A stretch of 64,000 nucleotides of DNA from Bugula neritina (Eukaryota; Animalia; Bryozoa): NCBI GenBank assembly GCA_964035545.1, contig OZ037769.1:15964633-16028632 (forward strand), given 5' to 3'. The notes under the pieces were generated by a model, which saw only the letters and a program-made list of their open reading frames with translations, was not told the origin of the DNA and did no database searches. Within the stretch, counting starts at the first letter, position 1, and each line of letters begins with the position of its first letter. Positions 29,301 through 61,020 of this stretch are shown one piece after another. Position numbers and translations under genes: made by a program.

Positions 29301-32167
29301 GCTTACAGATGCGGTGGTACTGGCCTGGGATGACAAGGGATGTGAGGCTACAGATCCGGCAATGTGAAATCTGCCAGGCGAGTAAGCATGGCCGTTCTAC
29401 CGAGACCACGGGACGGCGCAGGCTGTACGCCGGTCGCCCGTGGCAGACAGTGGCAGTCGACTTGGTGGGTCCCATGCCGACGTCCGCTCGTGGAAACAAC
29501 TGGATTCTGGTACTAACGGATCATTTTACTAGGTGGGCAGATGCCTTGGCAATCCCGGACGCCTCCGCCCCGACGGTAGCCCGAGCTTTAGATCAGCACG
29601 TTTTCTGCTATTTCGGGCTACCGGAGCAGATCTACACAGATCAAGGGGCACAGTTCCAATCACAGCTGATGAGGGACCTCTGTCGGGTATGGGGGGTCAA
29701 CCAAAGTAGGACCACCCCCTACCACCCCCAAGGAAATGGCGTAGTGGAACGCAACAACAGGATGTTGGGGGACGCCCTGAGGAGTCTACTACTAGGGAAA
29801 AGCCAAGAAGAATGGGACGCCGTGCTACCCCAGATCATGCGTGCATATCGCAGTACTCCCCACTCTAGCACCCAGGAGACACCCAATTTCCTAATGCTAG
29901 GCCGGGAAACACGGGTCCCGGATCATCTCACGTACCACGTCCCCCTCCCAGAGGGACCTGTCCACGAATACGTGAGAGAGCTGGTTGATAGGATGCGGAC
30001 GGCCCATGAGGTCTTAAGGGAAAAACAATGGCAAGTGCGAGGGGAAGACTCGGACGAGCCCCCACTCTACCAGGCTGGCGATTGGGTATGGATGATTAGT
30101 TACAGGAGGAAGCGCGGACAGTCGGCTAAATTACAGCCCAAGTTCGTGGGACCATACTGCATCATCGAAGTGCTACCCAATCACACGTACCGCGTAGAAC
30201 GCTCCGGACAGATTTCCGTCCAAAGCGAGAAATGCTTAAAACCGTACTGGGCCAGCCCTGGGGCAGTAGGACAAGCACCACCACTCCTGGAGCCAGCACG
30301 ACGACCCACCGGGGGAGGAAGGGCGCCCCCCACCCGAGAGTGGGAACTTCCCTATAACATACCGGAGAGAAACCCCGAAGCCCAAGAACCACCCCCCACT
30401 GTGCAAGAGCCCCCCGAGCAACCAGCACCTCAGGCGCCCCCACCAGTAAGACCACCCCCCGCCGTACCAGAGAGGGTAGACCCACCTACCCTGGAAGTAG
30501 GAGAGAGTAGAGCCACCAACCCTGGGGGACAGGCCACTCTGCCAGACACAGAAGGCCTAAGACGTAGCCAGAGGACTCGAAGACCCCCTGGGTACTTAGG
30601 GGAATATTACTGTGGCCAGATAGGGAAAGGATACCCTAGCTCGGAGGACGAAGGGCCCCCCTTGTATTACAACTATTCACCACCTAACCACACCACCAGG
30701 GAGGCTCGATATCGGCCGGGGATCACCTCGATGTTCCTCACCCAGATCGGACAAAAACCCGATCCCGAAGTTGGAAAAACCCAGGCGAGGGACTCTCGCG
30801 ATAAACCACGAACGCATACTTCGTTCATTCCAATCGCAGCAAGCACACACGCCACACGGAATTTAATCTCTCGCCATCTAACAAATATGGATATTACACC
30901 CACTCACCTGAATGTTGAAGAAGAGTCCAGCACACACCCTGGTAAGTCCACTAGACTAGAATTACCTCCTATACCGGAGAATTGTCTAGGTGGTGATGAC
31001 CGTAGGAACTCGAACTCTGATTCCCAGAGTAAATTCGAGATGTGGAGAACTCACACTTGGAACTCTGGAGGGTCAGACTCAGAGTCACCCAACAGAGATT
31101 ACCTACTTGACCAGGACATCCAGAGTATCACTCTACCCCCACCTCGGCAGCTCGCAGTATCGCGACGAGTGCCATATAAGGATATCACTAATAGAGTGAG
31201 TCAGCCATCACGAGTTGGAGATATCGGTCAGACTCGACCAGCTCAACTCTCTATTTCTGTTGTAGACACCGACAAAGTCGTAGAGCCTGCCTCTACGACT
31301 CTCACCTCATTCGGAAGATCCTCCGAAATCGCGACACCCCAGGAACAAGTAATGGAGGGAGATACAGAGACCCCTGCCACTGTCGTCGATATTGGACTAG
31401 ATGAAGGGGAGGAACAGTCTATCCTGTCCCCATCTGAAACTACAGACCCCCCTCAAGGACTAGGAGGAGCTGGAGAGCTAGGATTACCCCGCGTTTTCAG
31501 CACCCGGTCTCACTGGACCAGCACCAAGACGCGGATCCTGATAGCTGAGGCCTGCGGGGAGCCTAGCAACACCAAGTGCCCCACCTGTGGGCGGAGCTTT
31601 ACCTCACACAGGCGACTACGGATACACGTCCAACAACATTACGTTAACTCATTCTGTCCGTGTGGGGAGTTTAGCTTTCAGCGCGACTACGTGCTCAAGC
31701 ACCAACGTATCGGCCGCTGCCACACGGGCAGAATTTTTGATGTAGATGCGGACAATTACCTAGAATTCAGGGACCTGATTCTCCCCCACATCAGCGATCC
31801 CAAGAAGAGGGAGCTGTTGTCCCAAGGGTTCCCGGCCTGTCGACCCACTAGTCAGACGCAACCGCCAGAAGACCCCCCAAGTTGTGAGTTGCCACCCACC
31901 CAGCCTCTCCGGGTAGTGGTAACTCGAGCCGAAGCTACTACAGAAGGAGACCTCCGGACGCCACGAGAAACGGCCCGAACTAGAAGAGAACGGCGTAGAC
32001 AGGGCGCACCGAGGCCGCGTAGTACCACTCCCTATACTACTAGGCACACACACCGTGGACCCCCGGAGAGTCTGGAGGATGTATATCGTGACCTGGACAG
32101 GATCTCTGAGGAACTAGGACGCATACGACGCAGACTGCAGGACCTGGAGCGGCCCGCTCGACCCTAA
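26243..32167 (+). CDS. pol: Pol polyprotein (protease, RT, RNase H, integrase with HHCC and GPY motif) plus long C-terminal extension with C2H2-like fingers; probably expressed as a Gag-Pol fusion
   Basis: LLDTG protease (26732), YLDD RT (28022), TDAS RNase H, H..H...C..C and D,D35E integrase, KFVGPY (~30150); open for 1974 codons. Confidence 0.95.
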   Translation: MLEVWDNRSCATRLSPRTQRSFKHPRPAVISATRRPSLQTHPRRVYSAPREAQTEPPSAEWQAPRRTWRPKGLPEPPAWPLNNRFAGLPEEVVEEDTDSDRDFPRLPSKPQKTPVVPRTCKRPTVQTQEVSPPETDYSKHTQPYGSSYFLPGKIAGKAATFLLDTGCTTNLLSRRLFDTLGARERESLKPYNGEHGTLADGSSIPFYGLISLPGRVRDLVIHETFIVSHLKEDAILGMPFLEEHQCHMDFNKSAIVVDGKELTCVDKFGRPLVGGVQVVRDSLIPGRSQATLRCRVNCKEISELGVVEGMHGKVQLANSLNRLDCRGEFLVQCINPYAEPVKLSAGSLVGRYHSVQETDVGPTLDATSETPSRPLESGMGPVPEHVAELYKGACGGCGSNVERQRMAQLLREYHDVFSQGDEDMGLTNVVRHEIPLVTGTAPIRQPTRRLGPEKEREVSRQVQDLLDRDLIEPAHGAWSSPVVLVKKKDGSWRFCVDYRKLNSVTIQDAYPLPRIDESLDALAGSRYFSTLDLLSGYWQVPLSPDAQDKAAFITRDGLWRWKVLPFGLTSAPATFQRLMEQVLSGLHWKTLLVYLDDVIVISPDFSTHVSRLREVFDRLRAAGLKLKPSKCALLQQEVKYLGHVVSRDGVATDPEKVRAVQDWTVPQDIYELRAFLGLVGYYRQYIPEFAGMAQPLNRLTAKGVRWRWTQEEQQAFDHLKARLVEAPILAYPDPTKQYILDTDASDHSMGAVLSQVQGGTEVVVAYYSKALSSAERNYCTTRKELLAVVKAVKHFRPYLYGRTFRLRTDHASLIWLCKRAEPSSQVARWLEILAEFSYRIEHRAGRKHGNADGLSRRPERDCKQCLHIEKRDGGPARSEVETQLKKTEAYRWEQGRLQSNVHSDAVQALRVNPTLARNVQDLCRLQETLPGVVGEIFRAKKEGRQPSEEEQRQKGVEFQQFCHRWDSLKFNSDGLLTISLAADRQHQERERVVCPHPLRRELIWETHKQAHAGTSRVIRCLQMRWYWPGMTRDVRLQIRQCEICQASKHGRSTETTGRRRLYAGRPWQTVAVDLVGPMPTSARGNNWILVLTDHFTRWADALAIPDASAPTVARALDQHVFCYFGLPEQIYTDQGAQFQSQLMRDLCRVWGVNQSRTTPYHPQGNGVVERNNRMLGDALRSLLLGKSQEEWDAVLPQIMRAYRSTPHSSTQETPNFLMLGRETRVPDHLTYHVPLPEGPVHEYVRELVDRMRTAHEVLREKQWQVRGEDSDEPPLYQAGDWVWMISYRRKRGQSAKLQPKFVGPYCIIEVLPNHTYRVERSGQISVQSEKCLKPYWASPGAVGQAPPLLEPARRPTGGGRAPPTREWELPYNIPERNPEAQEPPPTVQEPPEQPAPQAPPPVRPPPAVPERVDPPTLEVGESRATNPGGQATLPDTEGLRRSQRTRRPPGYLGEYYCGQIGKGYPSSEDEGPPLYYNYSPPNHTTREARYRPGITSMFLTQIGQKPDPEVGKTQARDSRDKPRTHTSFIPIAASTHATRNLISRHLTNMDITPTHLNVEEESSTHPGKSTRLELPPIPENCLGGDDRRNSNSDSQSKFEMWRTHTWNSGGSDSESPNRDYLLDQDIQSITLPPPRQLAVSRRVPYKDITNRVSQPSRVGDIGQTRPAQLSISVVDTDKVVEPASTTLTSFGRSSEIATPQEQVMEGDTETPATVVDIGLDEGEEQSILSPSETTDPPQGLGGAGELGLPRVFSTRSHWTSTKTRILIAEACGEPSNTKCPTCGRSFTSHRRLRIHVQQHYVNSFCPCGEFSFQRDYVLKHQRIGRCHTGRIFDVDADNYLEFRDLILPHISDPKKRELLSQGFPACRPTSQTQPPEDPPSCELPPTQPLRVVVTRAEATTEGDLRTPRETARTRRERRRQGAPRPRSTTPYTTRHTHRGPPESLEDVYRDLDRISEELGRIRRRLQDLERPARP
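26306..26363 (+). promoter_or_regulatory. -1 programmed ribosomal frameshift signal
   Basis: T TTA AAC heptamer in the gag frame (26306-26312), 6-nt spacer, perfect 9-bp stem ggcctgcgg(26319-27)/ccgcaggcc(26341-49), then a second hairpin gagtc-tcca-gactc; pol is in the -1 frame. Confidence 0.85.
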
Positions 32168-33887: not shown

Positions 33888-36299
33888 AATTTGAAGTAAA
33901 AATGTGTCATTTTCACCTGTGCCATTTTACTAGAAATATATATCTAGCTTTTATATAGTATTCTTGTAATTTTTCATCATAGCAATAAATAAATTACATT
34001 GTTTCCACATTAATATTTCATATACTTATAGTTTATTAGAAAGCTTACGTTGTTCATTGTGGATGTTGACTGCTGCAGAAACTGACTATACTATTTTCAA
34101 AATTTGAAAGGAAAACACATTCTTGGTGCAGAAGTGGCAGAATATGTAATACAATTTTTTTCAAATTGAAGGTAAGAAATAGGATCATTTCAGCATTCAT
34201 TAGCTGCACATAATAGTTTATGTGTATATTTATATGGTGTGGACTTGCTATTACTGTGAGCTACAATATTACCAGCATAGGTGGTTCATTTAACCTCTTA
34301 GTAGTTCCCATGGCTTACATACAATAAAATTCTAGTTGAATAGAATATTTACTATTGTAAAGTACAAAACAAATGACCAGAATATTTCGTTTGTTAAACA
34401 GAAATTTTGTAATACTACTGTGGATTGGCTACTGTACATTAGCTAGATGTAGGCGGAGTCTACACTACCCAGCCATCCAGATGCATATACTAAAGGGCCA
34501 TTCAAAAACCAGCCAATCAAAGTCATGTACCAAATTCACAGCCGTTTACTACAAGCTTTCAATGCTAAACAATAACTCATTCAAGCTGCAACAACAAATA
34601 ACTACTAAGCTGGTAGTTATGTAATAATTGGCCTTAAGTTGCAAAAGTGTACCAGGTCATTTTTCTAGACATGCAATTTTTAATTGCATTTTATAAACAC
34701 TTAATTTAGACATTTAAAAAATCATTTCAAGAGTCATCAATTTAAGATATGAAATTAAATAATGCATGAAAAAAAGTTGCACAACTAGCTTTTAGAAGCA
34801 TGCATTTTGCAATTGAACTTGCAGAATTTTATATCAGTTACAATGGTAAGACATTGACCTGGTACACTTCGCTGATTGGCTGAGTTTTACATGGTCTATT
34901 AAAATACTATAATATAGTCATTGCATATATGAATAAATAACATGATTAAAGATATGGTGGAATTTACAAACTTTGTCATGTAAACCCGTAACATATGGTA
35001 TAGTTTTATATGTTTCAAGCCAGTGTAATATAGTAATAATTGTCCCATGATATATATTTCCCTCGCTATATATACAATGTGATTGCAATTATTGTTTATT
35101 TTTACTATAGAGTAGTGTTCACATTGTGTATATGATAAGATAGTTTTCGTGGATTGATGAATTTTGTAAATGAAGTGTATATTTGTGGAAAGCATGCAAG
35201 CCAACTCTGATATACCATGGTATATTAGAGTTTGTATATAAGCAATAAACATATTTATATAGCACCATATTATTATATAATACACGTCACATTCATGTTC
35301 GACTACCATAATGTTTAGGTCTCTGAAATTGCATTTGTTATCTCAAAAGTAATAAAACCAATTTTATGATGGCCAATAAAACTGTAGAGTCAATATAATG
35401 GAAACTTTATCTCAGATTCTAAATAGTCAATTTAAGCTCTTCTTATTATCTATAAGTGTTTTATGATGGACCTGTGTGATGGAAGTTATTGGTATGAAGT
35501 GTTTATTATTACGTATACAAGGTATATATGTGTACAGTTCCCACGTCTTTAAAATTGTGCAATATTAAAGGAATATATACGAGAAATGAAAAAGCAGAGC
35601 TATAAACCTTTTCAAAATTTGGAGTATACCATGCTGAGATATGGATAGTCTACTTAAAGCTTCTTCAAAGAAGATTACCCTATCATGCTTTACAAATTAG
35701 TTAAAACTCTTTATATGAAATGTTGTTCCTCTGTAAACACGTCACATGATGTGAGACAATGCTCCAAGCCACTCATATAGTGTGAGAAGTTAATAAGCTA
35801 AAATTATAAGTTTATTAAATATAAAAAAGTTTGAAAAAAAGAACAATTTTCACGTAGAGCACTCCCTGCTATACTTCATGCAGCTGGGAATAATCAAAAC
35901 AGAGAAACAATTTCTATAAGGTAAGAAATGTGTTGTAATATATTACATTTGGTTAACTGGATGATCATTTATACTATATATACACTATAATATCACTAAA
36001 TAATAATTATTATAAGTTTATAATCCTTGTTGTCATAAAACAATATATTATACATGTAGAATTCATGCCATCACATGGTACATTATATAGTACACTGAAT
36101 GTGCAACAACCTCGGTCATGCGTTCTCCTTCTATGTCAATCATTTTGAGAAAATGGTCATTGGAAAACATTGTGAGATTAGAGAGCATTGGCCCGTGATG
36201 ATGTCATAGAAGGAGTATAATATTACCTATGTTATTGTTAAATTTCCAGAACATAAGCTTGGCCACATTGATAAATATATATAATATATGTATATATTA

Positions 36300-36302
<3 letters not shown>

Positions 36303-36353
<51 letters not shown>

Positions 36354-36363
36354 TATATATATG

Positions 36364-36432
<69 letters not shown>

Positions 36433-36528
36433 TATATATAAATAGGTATACGAGAAACATTGTTATTTATTACTTTATTAGGTAAAGTAATTACACTGAT
36501 ATTTCGGGTACCACTGTACCCATCTTCA

Positions 36529-36619
<91 letters not shown>

Positions 36620-36629
36620 TATATATATG

Positions 36630-36678
<49 letters not shown>
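36303..36678. repeat. compound (TA)n/(CA)n microsatellites
   Basis: Two similar (TA)n-acacacacat-(TA)n blocks. Confidence 0.95.
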
Positions 36679-36679
<1 letters not shown>

Positions 36680-36762
36680 ATATACTTTTATTTTTATTTA
36701 TTATTATATATACATTCATTTATTATTCCAATGCTCAGGTACTTAACATAACATGGTGAATC

Positions 36763-36852
36763 ATGGAGGAGTACATTGCTGAATTAGAGTTACTTTTAAT
36801 AAAACACTTGGGAAAAGCAGAAAAAACAAGAAACTGGGTTGACTACATCAAG
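36763..36852 (+). CDS. predicted first coding exon of NTase-TPR gene A ([30 protein letters not shown])
   Basis: ATG, 30 open codons, aag|gt donor in phase 0, matching the phase-0 acceptor at 39274/39275; frame conserved in copy B. Confidence 0.6.
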
Positions 36853-37578
36853 GTACTACAATATATATTTTATGGTAGAATATATTAGAATGCTATTTGA
36901 ATTTGAGTAATATACCTAGTTGTTGAATTATAGCTAAAATAATATGACATATACAAATTAGAGTAATGAATAAAATAATATATTACTCATCTGTAGACAT
37001 AAACAATTAGTAAATTATTATAAAAAGTGATGATGCAGGAGTTGCAGCAAATTAATTAGAACTCTGATCTACTGAATATTACAATAAAATAACTTTAATT
37101 ATTTCTATAGAAAAGTTTATTTTGAGACAGTTGCTGCTAATCAAGTTTGAAGCTAGACAACATTTCTATTGAAACAAATTTTCTTCTGCTGTGAAGATTT
37201 GGAAGAATTAAATCATATAAAATCACAAAACTGGGTATTTACAAGTATATATAGTATATGAGTTGATTCCGAATCTTTCTTTACAAACTGAATATTATAA
37301 TAATACAAATATTTAGAAAACTATAGGAATACAAACTTTTATTTTCTAATTTATAACTATTATCTATAATAGGTATATACTGAACTTACTCGTTTCAAAA
37401 TAATTTCAATTTTATTTTATTTGCTGCCTTTGAGAGTTATCTGATTAATATCTGATCACTGGAGCCTCACAAAAACTTAGCTGCAGGAAGACAGCTGCAC
37501 GTAGCTATATGGTTATACATAAAACACCGTTGGCGATTACAAAAATCATATAGTAGCTGTGCGTGTCGAAGACAGTGC

Positions 37579-38014
37579 TAGGGCCACACAACTCGATTTA
37601 CACACGCATGACATGCGAGAAAACCTGTTTAGCTCAAAAATGGGATGTTGTGTGCGAGTTTTCATGCAACTAACATGCTGAGAGAAAAGTGGGGAAGCTT
37701 GTGCGTGTTTGATCTAATTGGCTTATTGTCATTTAGCGAGCACACTTTTTTATTTTAATTTATGTTTTAGCTTTTATCGAACTAAATTAAAATTGTTTCA
37801 TATAGTTCGCATTTCCACTTTAATAATATCTAAAGTCACTTTGTCGATGATGTAGTTTTAAAAACAAAAGTCTGTAGGCGAGCAGTAAAGTTTAACGCTA
37901 ACATTATCATAGCTATTAAATTTCGGCAAACGAAACACACGCATTGTGCGTAGCATATGTCTAAACGGGTTTTCTCGTACGTCACATGTGAGTAAATCGC
38001 GTCGTGTGGCCCTA
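37579..38014. mobile_element. PIF/Harbinger-like MITE (present in both duplication copies)
   Basis: ~50-bp imperfect TIRs tagggccacac...gagaaaacc / ggttttctcg...gtgtggcccta; related copies at 55005-55447 and 61340-61687. Confidence 0.8.
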
Positions 38015-38769
38015 ACTGCACTGTACTAAAAATAAACTGCAAAGTTTGTCAGTTGCAAGTATCTCGGAGATTATACGGCTATAAACTGCAACTACATGGA
38101 GTGCAGACCAGTTTTAGGGTCTTGACAACACGTTTACAGAAAAAGATGGTGACTGTAAGAGTAGCTGCATGGAGGTTGAAACTTGTAGTCTGGGACTGCA
38201 GGGTGTTTCCTGAGCAGAGATAATCATTTTGATAACTTTCTATACAATCCGCACTACAATTTGAACTTTTACAGTTTAAATATAAACAATTCATGTTAAA
38301 CAAATATAACCTGTTTACAATGTATATACTATATTAAGTAGTTAACATGACACATGACAAGTAACTAAATGCAGAAAACAGCATATAGTAGTGAGTATAG
38401 CATATGCTAAGAATAAAAAAAGTTAATAAATTTTAAACAATATTCAGATAATGTTAACAACTCAATAAATCAGATGATGGTTATTGGAATGTAGCGTTCT
38501 AGACTAGACTGTCTCCAAAACCGTATTTGGCTTCTCACTTGCAATCATCTTGGAAACCCTGTCTTGGAGTGCGAGGAATATTGGGTAGTTGGAGGTTACC
38601 AGTTGTAGTCTCAGACTGCTAATTGGTGTTACCTCGTGATAACAGCTTTACCAACCAGTCTCCTAGTTTGAACATCTCCATTTTAAAATATAAATAATTG
38701 AAAAAAGTTAGTATGTTAACAATATTGAGCATGCGTAGTTATCAACAGAAAAAACAGATAAATGCATAA

Positions 38770-38772
<3 letters not shown>

Positions 38773-38855
<83 letters not shown>
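38773..38855. repeat. (TA)n microsatellite
   Basis: About 40 TA units here; only a short TA run at the paralogous site (~56204). Confidence 0.95.
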
Positions 38856-38859
<4 letters not shown>

Positions 38860-39274
38860 ACTGGAAATAGCTATTATATATATAGGAACATGTTAAAATT
38901 AGCAGTTGCCTTTTACATGAACTTAATACTACTAATAATCCAAGAACCAACTTCAAGTTAATGTACAGTTACTCTAAAACTGCTATAGTGTAAAAATTGA
39001 TCCTGTCAGGGTCGTGTGTACGTTTTAGTATCTCCAGATTGAAAAAGAAAACAAGTAAACGTCAAGATATAAAATTGAGTGGTAAAAGTTGATATAGTAT
39101 TAACTATATTTTATTTAATTGACTTGCATTTTTACAGTACTGCCGGTATTGATTCACCTTTCATTGTAAATGTTAAACAAATTTCAGTGTAGAGGAGTCA
39201 AAAAAATACTTTTTCCTTGAAGAGCAATTTTTGTTCTTGTAAATATAAGCAGTTGTCTTTCCTTTGTTATGTAG

Positions 39275-42200
39275 AGTCATGGAATAGCAAACCACCTGCA
39301 AACCATAGATTCACAAAACAGTCAGAGATACCAAAAAGTCTATGAAATAGAAAACAAATGGTACAAAGGAAAACATCCACTCACTTTTACAGAGCATCAA
39401 GAATTGACAAGAAAACACAAACAACAACTTAAAGAATATCGAGAGAATACAATCATTAACTTTGACAGTTTGAATAGTGATGTAGAGTTGTTGGACATAG
39501 ACAATGTGTTTAGTGATGCTAATTTAGAAATATCTAATCGGTTGTCTAATGATGTGTTTGCAAGTAGTGAGGAGTGTTCCAAAGCATTTGCAGAGTTTTC
39601 TTGTTCTATAATTAAATCAAGTAGAGAGTTGCTTAAAGGGTATCAAGTGGAGCCACCCTGTAATTTTGCTGTAGTTGCTTTGGGCTCAGTAGCTCGTGGT
39701 GAGGCAACTCCGTATTCCGACCTTGAGTACGCATTTCTCATTGAAAATGAGAATGAGAAAGATTATTTCACTCAGTTGGCTGTTGACACATATTTTAGAA
39801 TAACTAACCTCAACGAGTCCCCATTGAAAACCTTCAACATTAAAGTTGAAAACTCTCCTGACTGTCTCAGTGAGATCTGCCCTGTAGGATATAGAATAGA
39901 TGGTCTCACACCAAATGCTGGTAACATACCGACAGGAAATGGATTGGGTAGAGCTCTCACCTTCACAGTTGAACAAGCAGTGAAGCTGTACAAAGAGGAA
40001 GTGATGTCACCATCTGAGGAACTAGCCAGTCTTTCGGATCTGCTCATGACATCACAGCTGATATACTGTTCTGGTGACGGGGCACAGTTACATGACAGAT
40101 TTATGGAAGAAATAGCTACATATGAGGAAGCTACAGCTCAGAATGATCCTAAAATCAAACAGAAGAGATTGGAGAGACTTTCTCTAGATTTACAGAAGTA
40201 TGATTTTCTCCCAGAATTTGAATTTACAACTTTTGTTGGTGAAGATGTGAAGGTAAAAGAAGACATTTTCCGTTACATCACTCTGTTGGCTACTAATCTG
40301 AACATTGCTCTTTGTTTTCAACTGAACTTTCCATGGAAGGTTTATGAGGCACTTTATCAGTCCGAGATGATTTCTAAAGGAAACTTGAGATACCTTCACA
40401 TTATCCTTGGACTCTCAATATACATGAGAACTATGGCATATATCATGATGGGAACTCAAAAAGCTGAAATCTTACTGAGTACTCCAACTGCTGAAATGAA
40501 AAGTGGAAATGAAAGACACAAACATTACTATGTACCTAGAAAAATATTTGTGACATATGGATCAATACTGATTCCAATAAAGCAATCCCTCATATCAAGT
40601 ATGAACAAAGGAAATAGGCTACTGTCAGCATTCAAGGAAAAGAGTGTGAGTGAATACCTAAAATTAGTGATTCCCAGTGACTTGGTGACAGATAAACATG
40701 ATTATATGACAATTTGTGAGGTACTGTGTTATGTTAAAGACAGAAACACAGCCTTAAAGTACATATCTGCTGATTCAGGTGTTGATATCAGAAGTGTAGG
40801 GTATGAGGAGTTTGTGAAATGTATAAGATCAAAATACAGTACAAACAAGTCAGACTTTCTAGAGAAAAAGTATTTGAAAATGTGCTGTCATTTGCTGACT
40901 AACAGTACCCATTATAGTAGTGCTATCGACTACCTAAGTTGGTTAATCAGTTATGAAACAAATTGGTTTAGTATACTGCAACGTAAGAGGCTGATAGCTG
41001 ACTGTATGAACAAACTGAGTAGATATAAATCTGCTAGAAATATTCTCAATCAGATAAAGTCTACACTAGAAGAAGAGCTCATCATAGACAAGAACACATC
41101 TCTCACTGAGTACATACTAAGAAAGGTAGACACTTCTACTAAATTGCCACAGTATATGCTACATTTCTTTCAATTCACATCTGATCTCTTCCACTCACTG
41201 GGTGACACTAATATTCACTTATCAAATCTAGCTGAAGCTAAGTCTTACCTGATGCAGTCTCTTTCTATTAGCAGAGCATTGTGTGAAAAGAATGTTTTAG
41301 ATTATAGTGCAAGAAAAAACAAGATAATGGAATCAATTATTCGGAGCAGCTTAGGAACTGTGTATTCACAGGAGGGTGCATATAGCACAGCATTAGAATA
41401 TTACACAAAGTCAATAGAGATGATGAAAGCTGTTTATGGTGAACATACAAACCACTCTAATATAGCTAGCAGCTATGTTAATATTGGCAATGTACACAAA
41501 CAACTAGGTAACTATGACACAGCACTAGAATATCACACCAAGTCAATGGAGATGATGAAAGCTGTTTATGGTGAACATACAAACCACTCTAGCATAGCTA
41601 TCAGCTATAATGATATTGGTAGTGTACACAGACAACTAGGTAACTATAACACAGCATTAGAGTATTTCACCAAGTCAATGGAGATGGTGAAAGCTGTTTA
41701 TGGTGAACATACAAACCACTCTAGCATAGCTATCAGCTATAATGATATTGGTAGTGTACACATACAACTAGGTAACTATGACACAGCACTAGAATATTGC
41801 ACCAAGTCACTGGAGATGAGGAAATTTGTTTATGGTGAACATACAAACAACTCTAGTATAGCTATCAGCTATATTACTATTGGTAATGTACACAAACAAC
41901 TAGGTAACTATGACACAGCATTAGAATATTACATCAAGTCAATGGAGATGCTGAAAGCTGTTTATGGTGAACATACAAACCACTCTGATATAGCTATCAG
42001 CTATAGTAACATTGGTACTGTACACACACAACTAGGTAACTGTGACACAGCATTAGAATATCACACCAAGTCACTGGAGATGTATAAAGCTGTTTATGGT
42101 GAACATACAAACCACTCTAGTATAGCTAGCAGCTATGGTAATATTGGTGATGTACACAAACAACTAGGTAACTATGACACAGCACTAGAATATCACACCA

Positions 42201-43021
42201 AGTCAATGAAGATGGAGAAAGCTGTTTATGGTGAACATACAAACCACTCTGGTATAGCTAGCAGCTATGGTAATATTGGTAATGTACACAATCAACTAGG
42301 TAACTTTGACACAGCACTAGAATATTTCACCAAGTCAATAGAGATGAAGAAAGCTGTTTATGGTGAACATACAAACCACTCTAGTATAGCTATCAGCTAT
42401 GGTAGAATTGGTGATGTACACAGTGAACTAGGTAACTATGACACAGCACTAGAATATTACACCAAGTCAATGGAGATGATGAAAGCTGTTTATGGTGAAG
42501 GTTCAGCACATCCTGGTCTTGTAACTGTGATCTCTTCCATTATAGACATCTATTTAATATACAACAGATATGAAGACTGTCTGTCCCTTTGCTATACTCC
42601 TGTGTTGAGTAATCCATGTCTGTCCAAAGTCCTCAACAGAATATCAGCAGATTACATCAAATCATCAAACTACAGAAGAGCTGCTCAGTTTCTGCAGATT
42701 GCTATTTCTAAAGCTGCTGATCATAGCATGCAGCAGGCTGACAACTACCACCAGATGGGTAAATGTTATATGCTGATGTCATCATACAAGAAGAGTTGGT
42801 GTTGGTTGCACTCTGCTCTCTGCCTGTATCAGTCCTTCCCCAAAACCGGGAAGGCCATTTTGTCTCTTGGGCAAGTTCACCTATCTATATCCCATCTACT
42901 TCTGCACACTGGTCATGTGACTCAGTCTCTTGAATATTGTCAAAGATCTCTTGACAATTTTAACAATCTCCCTGATGTCAATACAAACTCTGCTGTCAAA
43001 TATCTGAAGAGAGATATTTGA
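39275..43021 (+). CDS. nucleotidyltransferase (Pol-beta superfamily, GlnD/GlnE/DUF294-like) - helical region - TPR array protein, copy A, large exon (9 homogeneous 44-aa repeats)
   Basis: Frame opens exactly at the tttgttatgtag| acceptor; hhhhGSxARxExxxxSDLE motif (39662-39727), GYRIDG third-carboxylate candidate, DVKVKEDIFR helical segment; kinesin-light-chain/nephrocystin-3-like TPR units 41387-42499; further degenerate TPRs at the C-terminus. Confidence 0.88.
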   Translation, partial: SHGIANHLQTIDSQNSQRYQKVYEIENKWYKGKHPLTFTEHQELTRKHKQQLKEYRENTIINFDSLNSDVELLDIDNVFSDANLEISNRLSNDVFASSEECSKAFAEFSCSIIKSSRELLKGYQVEPPCNFAVVALGSVARGEATPYSDLEYAFLIENENEKDYFTQLAVDTYFRITNLNESPLKTFNIKVENSPDCLSEICPVGYRIDGLTPNAGNIPTGNGLGRALTFTVEQAVKLYKEEVMSPSEELASLSDLLMTSQLIYCSGDGAQLHDRFMEEIATYEEATAQNDPKIKQKRLERLSLDLQKYDFLPEFEFTTFVGEDVKVKEDIFRYITLLATNLNIALCFQLNFPWKVYEALYQSEMISKGNLRYLHIILGLSIYMRTMAYIMMGTQKAEILLSTPTAEMKSGNERHKHYYVPRKIFVTYGSILIPIKQSLISSMNKGNRLLSAFKEKSVSEYLKLVIPSDLVTDKHDYMTICEVLCYVKDRNTALKYISADSGVDIRSVGYEEFVKCIRSKYSTNKSDFLEKKYLKMCCHLLTNSTHYSSAIDYLSWLISYETNWFSILQRKRLIADCMNKLSRYKSARNILNQIKSTLEEELIIDKNTSLTEYILRKVDTSTKLPQYMLHFFQFTSDLFHSLGDTNIHLSNLAEAKSYLMQSLSISRALCEKNVLDYSARKNKIMESIIRSSLGTVYSQEGAYSTALEYYTKSIEMMKAVYGEHTNHSNIASSYVNIGNVHKQLGNYDTALEYHTKSMEMMKAVYGEHTNHSSIAISYNDIGSVHRQLGNYNTALEYFTKSMEMVKAVYGEHTNHSSIAISYNDIGSVHIQLGNYDTALEYCTKSLEMRKFVYGEHTNNSSIAISYITIGNVHKQLGNYDTALEYYIKSMEMLKAVYGEHTNHSDIAISYSNIGTVHTQLGNCDTALEYHTKSLEMYKAVYGEHTNHSSIASSYGNIGDVHKQLGNYDTALEYHTKSMKMEKAVYGEHTNHSGIASSYGNIGNVHNQLGNFDTALEYFTKSIEMKKAVYGEHTNHSSIAISYGRIGDVHSELGNYDTALEYYTKSMEMMKAVYGEGSAHPGLVTVISSIIDIYLIYNRYEDCLSLCYTPVLSNPCLSKVLNRISADYIKSSNYRRAAQFLQIAISKAADHSMQQADNYHQMGKCYMLMSSYKKSWCWLHSALCLYQSFPKTGKAILSLGQVHLSISHLLLHTGHVTQSLEYCQRSLDNFNNLPDVNTNSAVKYLKRDI
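41387..42499 (+). repeat. coding tandem repeat, 132 bp (44-aa TPR), 9 TALEY units
   Basis: acagcactagaatat...aaagctgtttatggtgaacatacaaaccactct repeated at a 132-bp period. Confidence 0.95.
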
Positions 43022-44214
43022 CAACTCTCTGCAACTCTCTGACTCATTGCGTCTTATTAAAATCTTAACCAATCACTTTTAGGAAAAATGCTCACCACAC
43101 ACCTAGTCTCCAGCAAGATTTTCAAGCTAGAATTTGCTTTCCCTTGGCCGACATTTTCTTCGTTTCGTGTATCTTGTGTGGACCCTGTGTGTTGTGATGC
43201 TTTCAGCATGCCGACAGTTATGCCATCAGTTCTTTAGTTGTTGATTCTGGTTTCACACATATGTATATAGAAATATGGTACTTTCATTGCCGTAGAGTTT
43301 CATGGCTCTATTTTTACATATACATGTAGATCTTTTATAGATTAAAATTATTATAATTCTTTAGTTTCCTGTGTTGTTTTACTACTTACAATATATTTGC
43401 TATACCCTGGGAAAGCAGTTTTGGTTAGTCTTATATAACTCAAGTTTTAAACTTGATTATAGTGACATTTGTGATTGTTATTGCAACGACATGATTGATG
43501 TTATATAACTTTTTATATTATTGTATGCTTTACTGTCTTGTATATTTTACCCACAATGCATTTGGTAGTTATAATCAACTTCCTGCATGACTATGAGCTA
43601 GAAGACTTTCTTATCAAAATATTATTTACTCTTTCGGAGCTTACCTTTTTCTTTTTCCTGTTTTCTTCCATCATTTGAGTAAATTGTATCTCTAACAATA
43701 TTCTACTTATGATGCATTTTATGCCACATTTTGTTTAAAGTTAATTTTGAAATTCAGAAAGCTTTTTTAGTTTCATAAAAGTTATACTTTTTGTAATTTT
43801 TGGACTGCAATTCTAATTCATACTATCTTATTGTGTTGCAGTATGTATTAAATAGTATTAGTAAATATATCTTATGTTATGCAAACATTATTCACTACTG
43901 TATTAGTTTGAATTTAAATTTAGCTCTTCATAGCAAATGTGTGCCAAAATGTAATATCTAAACATTATCCTGAAACAAGTAACATGTTAAAACATATCTG
44001 AACAGTGTGAAGATACTTCTAGCAACAAACAAATGACCTATATATTATTATACTGTATACATACGCTGTCAACCTCAGAAACTTTCTTTTGTACTCTTCT
44101 GATATCAACATTTTTTGCCTCCAGAATAGGCTATAGAAAGAAAAATTAATAAATTTAGTTAATAAATAATAATATTAAGGTACTGCATATTTTGAGCCAC
44201 TTGCTTTAAATTAC

Positions 44215-44730
44215 AATACACTGACTATTCATATAATAATATACCCAAAGAGTATACCATACATACATTACACTGACTATTCATATAATAATATACCCAA
44301 AGAGTATACAATACATACAATACACTGACTATTTATATAATAATATACCTAAAGAGTATATAATACATACAATACACTGATTATTCATGTAATAATATAC
44401 CCAAAGAGTATACAATACATACAATACACTGACTATTTATATAATAATATACCTAAAGGGTATATAATACATGCAATACACTGATTATTCATGTAATAGT
44501 ATACCCAAAGAGTGTACAATACATACAATACATGCACTAACTATTCATATAATAATATACCCAAAGAGTATACAATACATACAATACACTGAATATTCAT
44601 ATAATAATATACCCAAAGAGTATACAATACATACAATACACTAACTATTCATATAATAATATACCCAAAGAGTATACAATACATACAATACACTGACTAT
44701 TCATATAATAATATACCCAAAGAGTATACA
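44215..44730. repeat. 52-bp minisatellite, ~10 copies
   Basis: Unit aatacactgactattcatataataatatacccaaagagtatacaatacatac; period 52 (44221 to 44273). Confidence 0.95.
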
Positions 44731-49267: not shown

Positions 49268-51218
49268 CTACAATAAGAAGCAAAATGGTTCTGCATAGTT
49301 TTGCTGTAGCCATTGCATTAACACACTATACTAAACTACTGAAAAGCAGGGGAAGCAATCCTGTTTCTTCTAGCATGGATGGCAAAAGATTTTCTCCGAG
49401 CAGTTTAAGTTGATAAGAGCTCCTTAGGCTTATCAGTGATAGCAGCAAGTATTATTTCTTATTGATATTGTATAAGTAAAATGCTCTGGATAAGCATTGA
49501 CTTAAGTCTATTTATATATACACCGATATTAATGGCAGTTTCCTATCTGTGAAAAATAGCAAGTAACTTTTAAATCCAAGTGCCAAACAATTGTAAGCAA
49601 GGAAGCTACAATCTCAACTGTAAGCGTAAGCAAAGTCAAAATGCCAATAATAATTCACCTCATAAAAAGTGGCGTTGGCCCATTTTGTTGAAAAATAGTT
49701 AGAAAATATATAGTCAATTATTACGGAGAAATAAAGTAATGAAAGTTAAAAACTACACATTATATGTTACATAGAACAAAATTATGTTGTTTACAGTTTT
49801 CTCTTGCGTTATATCACAGTTTGAACTGGTGAGCAGCATTGTAAGATACTAGCTAATAAGAAATATAGCCTTAGGTTTAGGTAAACAGTCCCCCATCTGG
49901 TTGTCACAAGAAGTTAGTTTGCTATAACTCCAAGCACCTGCATTAGCAGTTCATTTACAACATTTTGTTCTTTCTCCACATTAAGAAAGTGACTCAATAT
50001 ATAAGTTTCTTTTGTTTCAATTGTCACGTGACACAATCTCATGACAATTTATTTCTTCTAATCCGAAGTTTAGTTGCATGGTACCCACTGTTGGAATGAT
50101 GAGTTAGAATCAATGAAATATCTTATTATTACATAATTTTATTGGGAATAAACTAGATTCATTCCTTGGCCTGCCAACAGTATAATAGGTTTGAAACTGT
50201 TTTTATGGAACTAAAGAGTAAATATTTAGACTCTATCTTGGATTCTAAAAGTTATTGTAAGCTCTTCTTATCATCTGTCACTATTTGTATAACATAAAGT
50301 TAATTAAAGTTATTAATATGCAGAGTGTTATCATTATATACACATCATGGGAGGTCTACAATGTACACATCCCTGCTATATACTGTTTATAGATAACTTA
50401 TATGTATTATGTTATATCGAAACATTGCAAATAGTGGGACGCAGTTATGAAACTTTTCAAACTTTGAACTTCACCATGTTAAGTTATGCATAGCCTACGA
50501 ATATACTTGTTTAAATAGAATAATCTTATCAAGGTACGTCTGCGGAGTTAACACTCCTTATATGGAGTGTTTTTCCTCCATAAACACGCCACATGACGTG
50601 AGACCATGCTTCAAGTTACTCCTATAGTGTGAGAAGTTAGTGAGTGGAATAAGTTTGTTAAATTAAGAAGTTAAAAAGAAGAAGCACTTTGTATGTGATA
50701 CTAATACTGTTTCATCTTGGATCATTCAACACACATTATATGCAGAAATAGTTTCTATGTAATAAGGTAAGACATACCATCGTTGTATCTTATTATATTT
50801 ATTTTTTGGTTGAATATTTACTACCATATTTCTATACACAAAACTATACACACTATTCCTAAAGACTCTATAATAAGTAACATATATAATGTAGTATGGT
50901 GTATTTTATGCTATGGTATAATGCATGTCTGTCATCCGTTTTGAAAAAGACATTGCGGCCAAACATTGTAAGATTAGAAACCTTTTGTCTTTATTGATGA
51001 CATCACAGCATTATTGTGAAATTACCAATGTTGTTGTTATCTTATGTAGTGTAGAGATATGATGTCAATTTGAAAGTATTTCCTGGAGAAGGTATATATT
51101 ATGACAAAGGAAGTACAAGATACAGACAACTGCATGAATTAACAAACTTGAAGGTAAAAGCTGTGCTTATTTTGTTATTAGATTTTTATCTGGTTGCAGT
51201 ACAATATCCAGAGAGTAT

Positions 51219-51328
<110 letters not shown>

Positions 51329-51370
51329 CACCGTATTCCAATGCTCAGGTACAACATAACATGGTGAATC

Positions 51371-51460
51371 ATGGAGGAGTACATTGCTGAATTAGAGTTA
51401 CTTTTAATAAAACACTTGGGAAAAGCAGAAACAACAGGAAACTGGGTTGACTATGTCAAG
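51371..51460 (+). CDS. predicted first coding exon of NTase-TPR gene B ([30 protein letters not shown])
   Basis: Paralogue of 36763-36852; same length, phase-0 aag|gt donor. Confidence 0.6.
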
Positions 51461-52120: not shown

Positions 52121-54905
<2,785 letters not shown>

Positions 54906-55004
54906 AGCTAGGGAAGACAGCTGCACCTAGCTATATGGTTATACATAAAGCAACATTGACAATCACAAAAATCACAGTAGCTGTGCGTATCGAAAACAGT
55001 GCTA

Positions 55005-56617: not shown

Positions 56618-59600
56618 AGTCATGGAATAGCAAACCACCTGCAAACCATAGATTCACAAAACAGTCAGAGATACCAAAAAGTGTATGAAATAGAAAACAA
56701 ATGGTACAAAAGAAAACATCCACTCACTTTTACAGAACATCAAGAATTGACAAGAAAACACAAACAACAACTTAAAGAATACCGAGAGAATACAATCAAT
56801 AACTTTGACAGTTTGAATAGTGATGTAGAGTTGTTGGACATAGACAATGTGTTTAGTGATGCTAATTTAGAAATATCTAATCGGTTGTCTAATGATGTGT
56901 TTGCAAGTAGTGAGGAGTGTTCCAAAGCATTTGCAGAGTTTTCTTGTTCCATAATTAAATCAAGTAGAGAGTTGCTTAAAGGGTATCAAGTGGAGCCACC
57001 CTGTAATTTTGCTGTAGTTGCTTTGGGCTCAGTAGCTCGTGGTGAGGCAACCCCATATTCGGACCTTGAGTACTCATTTCTCATTGAAAATGAGAATGAG
57101 AGAGATTATTTCACTCAGCTGGCTGTTGACACATATTTTAGAATAACTAACCTCAATGAGTCTCCATTGAAAACCTTCAATATTAAAGTTGAAAACTCTC
57201 CTGACTGTCTCAGTGAGATCTGTCCAGTAGGATATAGAATAGATGGTCTCACACCAAATGCTGGTAACATACCGACAGGAAATGGATTGGGTAGATCTCT
57301 CACCTTCACAGTTGAACAAGCAGTGAAGCTGTACCAAGAGGAAGTGATGTCACCATCTGAGGAACTAGCCAGTCTTTCAGATCTGCTCATGACATCACAG
57401 CTGATACACTGTTCTGGTGACGGGGCACAGTTACATGACAGATTTATGGAAGAAATAGCTACATATGAGGAAGCTACAGCTCAGAATGATCATAAAATCA
57501 AACAGAAGAGATTGGAGAGACTTTCTCTAGATTTACAGAAATATGATTTTCTTCCAGAATTTGAATTTACAACTTTTGTTGGTGAAGATGTGAAAGTGAA
57601 AGAAGATATTTTCCGTTACATCACCCTGTTGGCTACTAATCTGAACATTGCCCTGTGTTTTCAGCTAAACTTTCCATGGAAGGTTTATGAGGCACTTTAT
57701 CAGTCAGCAATAATTTCTAAAGATAGCCTGAGATACCTTCACATTATCCTTGGACTCTCAATATACATGAGAACTATGGCATACGCCATAATGGGAACTC
57801 AAAAAGCCGAAATCCTGCTAAGTACTCCCACTGCTGAGATCACAAGTCAAAATGGAAATTACAAACATTACTATGTACCAAGGAAGATATTTGTGACGTT
57901 TGGTTCAATACTAATTCCAATAAAACAATCGCTCCTATCAAGTATGAACAAAGGAAATAGGCTAATGTCAGCATTTAAGGAAAAGAGTGTGAGTGAATAC
58001 CTAAAATTAGTGATTCCCAGTGTTTTGATGACAGATAAACATGATTATATGACAATCTGTGAAGTATTGTGTTATGTTGAAGACCAAAACACAGCCTTTA
58101 AGTACATATGTGCTGGTTCAGGTGTTGATATCAGAAGTGTAGGGTATGAGGAGTTTGTGAAATGTATAAGATCAAAATATAACACAAACAAATCAGACTA
58201 TCTAGAGAAAAAGTATTTGGAAATGTGCTGTTACTTGCTGATTACTAGTGATTATGATAGTAGTGCCATTGACTACCTAAGTTGGTTAATCATTTATGAA
58301 ACAGGTTGGTTTCGTATACTGCAGTGTAAGAGGGTGATAGCTGAGTGTATGATCGAACTGAGTAGATATAAATCTGCTAGGAATATTCTCATTCAGATAA
58401 AGTCTACACTAGAAGAAAAGCTCATGATAGACAAGAATAAATCTCTCACTGAGTACATACTAAGAAAGGTAGAAGCTTCTACTAGATGGTCAGAGTATAT
58501 GCCAAACCTGTTTGACTTCATATCTTATCTCTTCCACTCACTGGGTGACACTAATATTCACTTATCAAACCAAGCTGAAGCTAAGTCTTACCTGATACAG
58601 TCTCTTTTTATTCACAGAGCATTGTGCGAAAAGAAGTTCTTAGATTATAGTGCTAGAGAAAACATGATGATAGAATCAACTATTCTGAGCAGCTTAGGAC
58701 TTGTGTATACACAGGAGGAAGCGTATAGCACAGCATTAGAATATCACACCAAGTCACTAGAGATGGATAAAGCTGTTTATGGTGAACATACAAACCACTC
58801 TAGTATAGCTAGCAGCTATTGTAATATTGGTAGTGTACACACACAACTAGGTAACTATGACACAGCACTAGAATATCTCACCAAGTCAATAGAGATGATG
58901 AAAGCTGTTTATGGTGAACATACAAACCACCCTAGTATAGCTATCAGCTATGGTAATATTGGTAATGTACACAAACAACTAGGTAACTATGACACAGCAC
59001 TAGAATATCACACCAAGTCATTGGAGATGGATAAAGCTGTTTATGGTGAAAATACAAACCACTCTAGTATAGCTATCAGCTATGGTAATATTGGTCATGT
59101 ACACAAAGAACAAGGTAACTATGAAACAGCACTAGAATATTACACCAAGTCAATGAAGATGACGAAAGCTGTTTATGGTGAAGGTTCGGCACATCATGAT
59201 CTTACAGCTGTGATCTCTTTTATTATAGACATCTATGTAGAATACAAGAGATATGAAGACTGTCTGTTTCTTTGCTATACTCCTGTATTGAGTAATCAAT
59301 GTTTGTCCGAAGTCCTCAACAGAATTTCAGCAGATTACATCAGCTCATCAAACTACAGAAGAGCTGCTCAGTTTCTGCAGATTGCTATTTCTAAAGCTGC
59401 TGATCATAGCATGCAACAGGCTGACAACTACCACCAGATGGGTGAATGTTACATGCTGATGTCATCATACAAGAAGAGTTGGTGTTGGTTGTACTCTGCT
59501 CTCTGTCTGTGTCAGTCCTTCCCCAAAACCAGAGGTGCTATTTTTTCTCTTGGTAAAGTTCACCTGTCCATATCCCTTCTACTTCTGCACATGGGTCACG

Positions 59601-59755
59601 TGACTCAGTCTCTTGAACACTGTCAAAGATCTCTTGACAACTTTAACAATCTCCCTGATGTCAATACAAACTCTGCTGTCAAATATCTGAAGACAGACCT
59701 TCTGCAACTCTCTGACTCATTGCACCTTATTAAAATCTTAACCAATCACTTTTAG
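56618..59755 (+). CDS. nucleotidyltransferase-TPR protein, copy B, large exon (4 homogeneous 44-aa repeats)
   Basis: Frame opens at the acceptor tatgtag|agt (56617/56618); same GS..SDLE motif; TPR array 58730-59182; intact C-terminus ...LIKILTNHF*. Confidence 0.88.
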   Translation, partial: SHGIANHLQTIDSQNSQRYQKVYEIENKWYKRKHPLTFTEHQELTRKHKQQLKEYRENTINNFDSLNSDVELLDIDNVFSDANLEISNRLSNDVFASSEECSKAFAEFSCSIIKSSRELLKGYQVEPPCNFAVVALGSVARGEATPYSDLEYSFLIENENERDYFTQLAVDTYFRITNLNESPLKTFNIKVENSPDCLSEICPVGYRIDGLTPNAGNIPTGNGLGRSLTFTVEQAVKLYQEEVMSPSEELASLSDLLMTSQLIHCSGDGAQLHDRFMEEIATYEEATAQNDHKIKQKRLERLSLDLQKYDFLPEFEFTTFVGEDVKVKEDIFRYITLLATNLNIALCFQLNFPWKVYEALYQSAIISKDSLRYLHIILGLSIYMRTMAYAIMGTQKAEILLSTPTAEITSQNGNYKHYYVPRKIFVTFGSILIPIKQSLLSSMNKGNRLMSAFKEKSVSEYLKLVIPSVLMTDKHDYMTICEVLCYVEDQNTAFKYICAGSGVDIRSVGYEEFVKCIRSKYNTNKSDYLEKKYLEMCCYLLITSDYDSSAIDYLSWLIIYETGWFRILQCKRVIAECMIELSRYKSARNILIQIKSTLEEKLMIDKNKSLTEYILRKVEASTRWSEYMPNLFDFISYLFHSLGDTNIHLSNQAEAKSYLIQSLFIHRALCEKKFLDYSARENMMIESTILSSLGLVYTQEEAYSTALEYHTKSLEMDKAVYGEHTNHSSIASSYCNIGSVHTQLGNYDTALEYLTKSIEMMKAVYGEHTNHPSIAISYGNIGNVHKQLGNYDTALEYHTKSLEMDKAVYGENTNHSSIAISYGNIGHVHKEQGNYETALEYYTKSMKMTKAVYGEGSAHHDLTAVISFIIDIYVEYKRYEDCLFLCYTPVLSNQCLSEVLNRISADYISSSNYRRAAQFLQIAISKAADHSMQQADNYHQMGECYMLMSSYKKSWCWLYSALCLCQSFPKTRGAIFSLGKVHLSISLLLLHMGHVTQSLEHCQRSLDNFNNLPDVNTNSAVKYLKTDLLQLSDSLHLIKILTNHF
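58730..59182 (+). repeat. coding tandem repeat, 132 bp (44-aa TPR), 4 TALEY units
   Basis: Exactly 660 bp (5 x 132) shorter than the array in copy A. Confidence 0.95.
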
Positions 59756-60807: not shown

Positions 60808-61020
60808 TACATCACACTTATCATTCATATAATAATATACCCGAAGAGTATACAATACATACAATACACTGACTATTCATATAATAATGTATCCAAAGAG
60901 TATACAATACATACAATACACTGGCTATTCATATAATAATATACCCAAATAGTATACAATACATACAATACACTGATTATTCATATAATAATATACCCAA
61001 AGAGTATACAATACATACAT
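60808..61020. repeat. 52-bp minisatellite, ~4 copies
   Basis: Same unit as 44215-44730. Confidence 0.92.

Follow-up and report, generated by a model that had tools for sequence, protein, structure and literature searches.

Why should a stretch of coding DNA be kept almost identical from unit to unit, down to its silent sites, when a few codons in every unit are left to vary? This question is raised by a gene of the bryozoan Bugula neritina, called gene A here, which encodes an array of tetratricopeptide repeats (TPRs). It lies in a window of 64,000 nucleotides, the whole stretch of DNA that was analysed (assembly GCA_964035545.1, contig OZ037769.1, positions 15,964,633 to 16,028,632 of the forward strand). 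The window is AT-rich, with about 30% GC, and the genome assembly amounts to 216 Mb. A second gene with a shorter array, gene B, follows on the same strand, and the two are tandem paralogues inside a segmental duplication (A 36590-43999, B 51216-60681; 87-92% identity). Repeat arrays that join homogenisation with diversifying selection are a hallmark of the NOD-like receptors (NLRs; NOD, nucleotide-binding oligomerization domain) that serve allorecognition and immunity in fungi. Judged from the sequence, there is a probability of roughly 70% that the array of gene A evolves under a regime like that of the fungal non-self receptor repeats and presents a variable TPR binding surface.

The repeats are regular in both genes. 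Tandem Repeats Finder reports a 132-bp period in gene A (41386-42499, 8.4 copies, 90% matches, score 1750) and again in gene B (58729-59182, 3.4 copies, 91%). This period corresponds to a 44-codon unit, whose codons are numbered here from the T of the motif TALEY. Gene A contains nine units starting with TALEY, at 41387 + 132n, eight of them full and the ninth a hybrid cap. Gene B contains three full units and a cap, and the two arrays therefore differ by exactly five units, or 660 bp. The mean pairwise DNA identity of the 11 full units of A and B is 89.9%. Ten codons (6, 10, 13, 25, 28, 31, 32, 35, 38, 39), which make up 23% of the unit, hold 76% of the nucleotide differences, and the scaffold outside them is 96.8% identical. 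The synonymous difference of this scaffold in the window units is 0.05, compared with 0.158 and 0.176 in the N-terminal and C-terminal coding parts of A and B, so that the silent sites of the scaffold, too, show an unusual uniformity. In several of the variable codons only the first two bases vary, the third being invariant. The variable columns mix C/T, T/G, A/G, and A/C changes and are not restricted to adenines.

The variable codons occupy particular places on the TPR fold. Position 1 of the Pfam TPR_1 profile falls on unit codon 27, which puts codons 30, 33, 34, 37, 2, and 9 at the canonical TPR signature positions 4, 7, 8, 11, 20, and 27. The variable codons 28, 31, 32, 35, 38, and 39 are TPR positions 2, 5, 6, 9, 12, and 13. 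Codon 25 stands just ahead of helix A at position -1, equivalent to position 33 of the preceding repeat, and completes the seven of the ten variable codons found at positions -1, 2, 5, 6, 9, 12, and 13. Magliery and Regan found TPR positions 2, 5, 9, 12, 13, 33, and 34 to be the most variable and to lie on the concave face, and HOP contacts its peptide ligands through positions 2, 5, 6, 9, 12, and 13 (PMC1261162). On a helical wheel the seven helix-A codons cluster on one face (resultant 0.69, P 0.003 versus random choices), 166 degrees from the packing face. These seven codons would thus map to the concave, ligand-contact face of helix A. The remaining three, codons 6, 10, and 13 (TPR positions 24, 28, and 31), form a stripe on helix B, 56 degrees from the packing face. 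Of these, codon 13 is genuinely hypervariable, and the changes at codon 6 (Y/H/C/F) and codon 10 (M/I/L/V) are conservative.

An earlier note, made from the letters of this DNA, had described 132-bp units that are almost the same even at synonymous sites, and the identities given above bear this out. The variable positions that it listed, SY[xx]IG[x]VH[x], ALEY[x], and M[x]K, correspond to codons 31/32, 35, 38, 6, and 13; codons 10, 25, 28, and 39 are added here. It also had the gap of five units and 660 bp right, but its copy numbers of nine and four include the hybrid caps, and the full units are eight and three. Its statement that helix-A residues line the TPR groove agrees with the HOP contact positions for codons 28, 31, 32, 35, 38, and 39 (PMC1261162), but codons 6, 10, and 13 belong to helix B.

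Gene A belongs to a large family. The part ahead of its array is matched at 66 or more places in the genome, and most of these are intact frames of 900-2267 codons in tandem clusters. Sixteen further close paralogues, 77-98% identical, were compared, which makes 18 genes with A and B. The 44-codon unit is common to all 18, which keep intact frames and contain between 3 and 8 full units each, always in 132-bp steps. Among the 93 distinct units of these paralogues, the same ten codons are the only ones in which the nonsynonymous difference exceeds the overall synonymous difference. A subfamily on another contig (C6) comprises five genes with 82 units, and its N-terminal domains are 32-36% identical to that of A. 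It displays the same site pattern, and seven of its ten most variable codons are codons assigned to the concave face a priori.

The close named relatives are also bryozoan: a Bugula neritina protein (EB796_007152, 85% identity over part of its length) and proteins of Watersipora subatra (31-37%). A more distant one comes from an octocoral. The closest public protein is at most 88% identical to any of the paralogues. Nine public proteins (P0001-P0009, including EB796_007152) were considered as alleles and rejected at identities of 77-88%; they are other paralogues or come from another species. A 44-residue period with high internal identity is present in distant members from Watersipora (P0012, 0.84, and P0013) and from JGI (P0015, P0016, P0018, and P0022), in which the same positions vary. 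Other family members have ordinary, diverged TPRs.

Selection was assessed at seven concave codons that had been chosen beforehand on the strength of the TPR literature, by comparing their nonsynonymous difference (pN) with the synonymous difference (pS) of the whole unit. Units were compared in disjoint minimum-distance pairs, which limits non-independence and recombination artefacts. The silent rate inside the variable codons was rejected as a neutral yardstick, being inflated (0.22), based on few sites, and affected by multi-step paths. The concave pN/pS was 5.5 (2.3-40) in the 11 units of the window, which provide 5 pairs, and 1.45 (1.11-1.94) in all 18 genes. In the C6 subfamily it was 2.63 (2.0-3.6), rising to 3.4 (2.5-4.8) in close pairs and reaching 2.85 with single-step changes only (p 8e-10). 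Scaffold codons remained at 0.4-0.6 throughout. The pattern is taken to reflect diversifying selection on the concave face; young arrays display it clearly, and saturation obscures it in older comparisons.

The silent sites have a history of their own. The 640 codons that precede the array differ between A and B by 0.158 at synonymous sites, and the 148 codons that follow it by 0.176; the C-terminal value for one paralogue (L018) was left out because indels misalign the comparison. Between array units of A and B, pS is 0.066, about 2.5 times below the flanks, and it is the same within each of the two genes (0.083 and 0.061). Across paralogues, interior units of the same index differ by 0.075 and those of different index by 0.081. 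Only 10 of 87 units find their nearest neighbour within the same gene, where 5 are expected by chance. Positional orthology is absent and units hardly cluster by gene; they behave as one pool across the clustered paralogues.

Traces of single exchange events can be recognized as well. In a paralogue whose N-terminal part is 98% identical to gene A (L013), unit 5 is a chimera, matching unit 2 of A over nucleotides 1-112 (all five diagnostic sites) and unit 3 of A over nucleotides 113-132 (both sites). Such a mosaic is the product expected of a crossover between adjacent units. Unit 6 of the same gene is identical to unit 4 of A. Another paralogue (L022) contains a duplicated block of three units, in which units 2 and 3 are identical to units 5 and 6. 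In a third (L028), unit 4 is identical to unit 6, and near-identical copies of units occur too. The silent-site deficit, the lost positional orthology, the chimera, and the block duplications together point to unequal crossing-over or conversion within and between paralogues. Concerted evolution and unequal crossing-over, both proposed in the earlier note, are therefore upheld, the former by an array pS of 0.066 against 0.158 and 0.176 in the flanks without positional orthology, the latter by the chimeric unit of L013 and the identical blocks of L022 and L028. The selection at a few positions that it proposed is likewise seen, with pN above pS at the concave codons in the window units and in C6, and at or above pS in the close paralogues.

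In the mechanism that is proposed, unequal crossing-over and gene conversion, acting within a gene and between clustered paralogues, would homogenise the scaffold including its silent sites. The same exchange processes would alter the number and order of units in whole-unit steps. Amino-acid changes would be kept above all where helix A lines the concave TPR groove, and about 6-7 variable contact residues per unit would give each paralogue a different binding surface. The arrays might in this way carry a combinatorial recognition code.

A neutral history has to be weighed against this proposal. The arrays could be young tandem amplifications in which the variable codons are unconstrained surface positions, with nothing adaptive about them. 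Under such a history pN should not exceed pS, but ratios of 5.5 in the window and 2.6-3.4 in C6 (p about 1e-9) are found at sites fixed in advance. The same few positions are variable in Watersipora, and exposed positions of the convex face and loops are conserved (scaffold 0.4-0.6), neither of which suits a lack of constraint at the surface. Amplification alone also leaves unexplained why the array pS lies below that of the flanks and why clustering by gene is missing. Neutrality draws its strength from the close family, where pN about equals pS when only single-step changes are counted (1.00). This figure is biased downward, and is thus conservative, because 48 multi-hit concave codons are discarded. 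It also draws on the 16 genes other than A, B, and L013, in which the ratio of 1.19 (0.90-1.62) is not significantly above 1, and on codons 6 and 10, which stay at about 1.1.

These figures weigh against diversifying selection on a binding surface, and several further points do the same. Codons 6 and 10 vary conservatively, adjoin the packing face, and look semi-buried, so that they are probably second-shell residues and not contacts. The window ratio comes from five independent pairs, and all the selection tests are pairwise counts and not recombination-aware codon models. Silent differences are raised inside the variable codons (0.22 versus 0.12); this may be an artefact of path averaging, or it could reflect locally raised mutation or mosaic conversion. 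The concave face was assigned from the TPR register and the helical wheel, and exposure was inferred from these and not read off coordinates. Gene A itself might be slightly impaired. A 10-bp insertion at 43014-43023 brings a stop codon and cuts off the last 17 residues that other paralogues keep (...SLHLIKILTNHF); it is found neither in gene B nor in L013. A purely neutral history is judged unlikely, and homogenisation combined with diversifying selection at the concave codons is preferred.

The proteins carry an enzyme domain ahead of the repeats. Pfam DUF294 is matched near the N-terminus of gene A with 30.1 bits (cut-off 21), and the domain has the GlnE/GlnD/DrrA-type motif with a third acidic residue (GS-x10-D106-L-E108, D166). 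G-S-x10-D-x-E followed by a third acidic residue is the motif of polymerase-beta-type transferases. An alignment of 25 family members, with identities as low as 20%, retains G94, S95, D106, E108, and D166 in every sequence. The AlphaFold model of residues 1-640 has a predicted local distance difference test (pLDDT) score of 84 and a predicted template modelling (TM) score (pTM) of 0.84. Its top Foldseek match is DrrA (6yx5_B, E 1e-5, TM 0.61 on the target), followed by both domains of E. coli GlnE (1v4a and 3k7d). Sequence identity to DrrA and GlnE is about 12%, and the Pfam score of SidM_N is below its cut-off. A profile search of solved structures with the N-terminal half returned TPR proteins only, and the kinship with DrrA and GlnE shows by fold and by Pfam DUF294 only.

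The rest of the protein is helical. The stretch between the enzyme domain and the array is TPR-like, and residues 410-625 give profile matches to kinesin light chain (KLC) and consensus TPR structures. In the C-terminal half, Pfam reports TPR_12 (E 2e-118) and TPR_1 (E 7e-58). Residues 600-1205 are modelled as a regular TPR superhelix (pLDDT 83.5), in which unit codons 43-17 form helix B and codons 24-39 form helix A. Foldseek relates this model to consensus TPR, OGT, LGN, and APPBP2, with E values from 1e-10 to 1e-12, and KLC is also among the matches. Profiles, helix pairs, and superhelix thus all identify the array as TPR, with a period of 44 residues. Domain order is not fixed in the family, as one Watersipora subatra protein (P0013) has TPR units on both sides of its transferase domain (TPR - nucleotidyltransferase - TPR).

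The predicted protein, as sequence and model present it, is a sensor-like TPR array fused to a DrrA/GlnE-type nucleotidyltransferase with intact catalytic residues. By analogy with DrrA and GlnE, the transferase probably AMPylates a protein hydroxyl. No Pfam match to NACHT or NB-ARC was found, and there is no Walker A motif in any of the 18 paralogues. Without a NOD or P-loop domain these proteins are not NLRs, and membership in the NLRs or in the signal transduction ATPases with numerous domains (STAND) was rejected; the earlier note had not called them NLRs. No published description was found of a DrrA/GlnE-type enzyme acting as a sensor-effector in animals. The groove could bind variable protein or peptide ligands, with specificity set by the number, order, and contact residues of the units, and binding could recruit a substrate to the transferase or switch the enzyme on.

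The same architecture could also serve a housekeeping purpose, in which the TPR groove picks endogenous substrates for the enzyme, the paralogues have divided host targets among themselves, and recognition of non-self plays no part. Docking of endogenous partners is common for TPR domains, as the matches to KLC, LGN, and OGT recall, and the enzyme domain is conserved and looks active from its sequence. Such a function predicts purifying selection and stable orthology, but shuffling, lost positional orthology, and pN above pS are observed instead. Moreover, a lineage-specific, tandem-clustered family of at least 60 members is typical of conflict genes. A housekeeping role is accordingly judged quite improbable, and a variable recognition surface remains the preferred interpretation of the arrays.

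The features of both genes are collected in the table. The two-exon models follow from RNA-type junction contigs and from an alignment of both upstream regions, and neither gene has an in-frame ATG ahead of the enzyme motif in exon 2. Exon 1 and exon 2 of each gene were handled separately in the searches.

Table. Features of genes A and B in the window (positions count from its first letter) and what each assignment is drawn from
Feature	Positions	Strand	Evidence or remark
Gene A exon 1, coding part, 30 codons, then GT donor	36763..36852	+	homology to gene B exon 1; in frame with exon 2
Gene A intron 1, GT...AG	36853..39274	+	polypyrimidine tract, AG at 39273-39274; depth resumes on the exon 2 side
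Gene A exon 2, single open frame, 1248 codons and stop	39275..43021	+	enzyme domain, degenerate TPRs, repeat array, C-terminal domain
Predicted DrrA/GlnE-type (DUF294) nucleotidyltransferase core	39563..40003	+	Pfam, invariant residues, AlphaFold/Foldseek
G-S-x10-D-x-E motif	39683-39727	+	third acidic residue D166 at 39899-39901
Degenerate TPR-like helical pairs, non-repetitive in sequence, leading into the array	40631..41386	+	profile matches and all-helical model
Gene A array, 8 full 132-bp (44-codon) TPR units	41387..42442	+	Tandem Repeats Finder, in-frame units, model pLDDT 83.5, PDB superhelix matches
Gene A hybrid cap unit, 19 repeat-like codons, then diverged	42443..42574	+	in-frame unit alignment
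C-terminal helical (TPR-like) domain, ending 17 codons early	42575..43018	+	model; stop from the 10-bp insertion
Gene B exon 1, coding part, 30 codons	51371..51460	+	22-nt exon end joined to exon 2 start in X7 and X9 contigs
Gene B intron 1	ends 56617	+	two-exon model
Gene B exon 2, 1045 codons and stop	56618..59755	+	long open frame
Gene B array, 3 full 132-bp units	58730..59125	+	Tandem Repeats Finder and in-frame units
Gene B hybrid cap unit	59126..59257	+	in-frame units

The sequencing evidence consists of short Logan contigs from four runs, which include the RNA-type runs X7 and X9. In contigs of these two runs, a 22-nt sequence is fused to the window at 39273, and its sole occurrence in the window is at 51437-51458, upstream of gene B. 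The junction contig thus has the exon 1 version of gene B, and splicing and transcription are demonstrated for gene B or a copy like it. For gene A they are shown at the family level only, since short contigs cannot separate the paralogues. In the intron of gene A, depth is zero over 37988-39151 in X7 and X9, and coverage is back at exon 2. A single variant letter of the array is common to three runs, a T>A change at 42083 in the first base of hypervariable codon 13 of unit 6, which may come from a paralogue and not from an allele.

The non-coding parts of the two genes contain several other repeats. A (TA)n-rich microsatellite of about 1.9 kb (52552-54474) in intron 1 of gene B explains most of the difference in intron size (5.2 kb in B versus 2.4 kb in A), and shorter (AT)n tracts occur in or near the intron of gene A (36271-36677 and 38773-38856). 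A stretch of about 215 bp in that intron (37692-37907) is covered very deeply by all four runs and is flanked by loose ends; an inverted copy of it (87.5%) lies downstream of gene B, at 61402-61593. Rather than an exon, this stretch is probably a small transposable element or a dispersed repeat. About 1.1 kb downstream of each gene is a 52-bp tandem repeat, with 9.9 copies at 44212-44730 and 3.8 copies at 60823-61019, so the non-coding portion of the duplicated segment is variable in length too. A 22-bp tandem repeat (25 copies, 89% matches) is located at 63199-63754.

If the assembly had collapsed or mis-joined these arrays, the difference of 8 versus 3 units and the mosaics could be artefacts, and no short Logan contig spans the array to settle the matter directly. 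The 18 close paralogues nevertheless keep intact frames, with arrays that differ by whole 132-bp units. Units differ from one another at 6-19 of 132 sites, which long accurate reads can resolve, the assembly contigs measure 10-17 Mb, and the array measures just 1.1 kb. Arrays of 4-8 units of 44 residues are also present in independent public proteins, which come from other samples and species. An artefact of this kind is therefore very unlikely.

Programmed diversification, by mutagenesis like that of diversity-generating retroelements, deaminase-type hypermutation, or somatic recombination among tandem paralogues, is hardly credible: it would suit the sharp localisation of the variation, the invariant third positions and somewhat raised silent differences at variable codons, and the paralogue cluster as a source of conversion donors, but the changes are not base-specific (C/T, T/G, A/G, A/C), there is no associated template repeat, the one reverse transcriptase in the neighbourhood is that of an ordinary Ty3/gypsy element, the variation is germline-encoded across paralogues and tracks a helical face of the protein rather than a DNA motif, and the contigs examined, although contigs drop rare variants, contain no joints or variant forms. 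A diversity-generating retroelement as such was rejected, the changes not being adenine-specific and the nearby reverse transcriptase being of Ty3/gypsy type.

That element is a GC-rich block at 25230-32167 on the forward strand, with 55-58% GC against the background of 30%. It is a Ty3/gypsy-type retrotransposon unrelated to the arrays, with a gag-like frame containing a zinc knuckle (25230-26330) and a pol frame of 1974 codons for protease, reverse transcriptase, RNase H, and integrase (26243-32167). A comparison of the GC-rich block at 24-32 kb with Rfam gave no match.

Under the preferred reading, a homogenised scaffold with diversifying selection at the groove, the regime of fungal repeats would now be found in a lineage-expanded family of a colonial animal, with a nucleotidyltransferase as the output domain. 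An immune or allorecognition role in this colonial animal is suggested by the evolutionary regime, the family size, and the tandem clustering, and is put forward tentatively, at somewhat less than even odds. The fuller proposal is doubtful: the family would be a new, NOD-less class of animal non-self receptors, with a germline repertoire of at least 60 members in which a shuffled TPR groove senses microbial or conspecific ligands and is wired to a protein-AMPylating effector. If it is true, this NOD-less TPR-transferase family could be the fusion/rejection or immune recognition system of bryozoans. Its members are candidates for non-self recognition in bryozoans and for protein AMPylation as an immune output in animals. 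The arrays also amount to a library of natural TPR binders in which the scaffold is fixed and the variable positions are defined.

The closest parallel is offered by fungal repeats of high internal conservation (HIC). HIC repeats, with more than 85% internal conservation, occur in only 0.8% of metazoan repeat proteins, and in the NWD family of Podospora the repeats behave as a pool exchanged within and between members (Dyrka et al. 2014, PMC4986451). The bryozoan family has in common with the fungal arrays its near-identical units, its variation in whole-unit number, the exchange within and between members, and selection on few concave TPR positions. Internal identity, variation from 3 to 8 whole units among paralogues, concerted evolution, and concave-codon selection, as measured by counting, were all found here. 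The bryozoan family differs from the fungal arrays in having no NACHT, NB-ARC, or P-loop, in its 44-residue unit, in its animal host, and in the attached nucleotidyltransferase; its variation has been shown among paralogues and not among alleles. A Podospora anserina protein with nearly identical TPR-like repeats (PDB 4Y6W), which appears among the structural matches, is also an extended TPR of kinesin-light-chain type with very high internal identity. It is fungal and has no enzyme fusion, and the comparison was made at the level of the fold. Its unit has 42 residues compared with 44 in the bryozoan family.

The enzyme domain has its own counterparts. Legionella DrrA/SidM and E. coli GlnE share with it the fold, the G-S-x10-D-x-[DE] motif, and the third acidic residue, but unlike the bryozoan proteins they carry no TPR array. 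Animal FICD/HYPE likewise combines TPR motifs and a protein-AMPylating domain in one animal protein. It differs in its unrelated Fic fold and its two TPRs only, and it is single-copy and conserved, without homogenisation or hypervariability of repeats. The variable lymphocyte receptors of lampreys resemble the bryozoan arrays in that a solenoid scaffold, a few concave residues per unit, and the number and order of units give the diversity of binding. They are leucine-rich repeat proteins assembled somatically from cassettes, whereas the bryozoan diversity, in which no sign of a somatic process came up, is germline-encoded and spread over paralogues.

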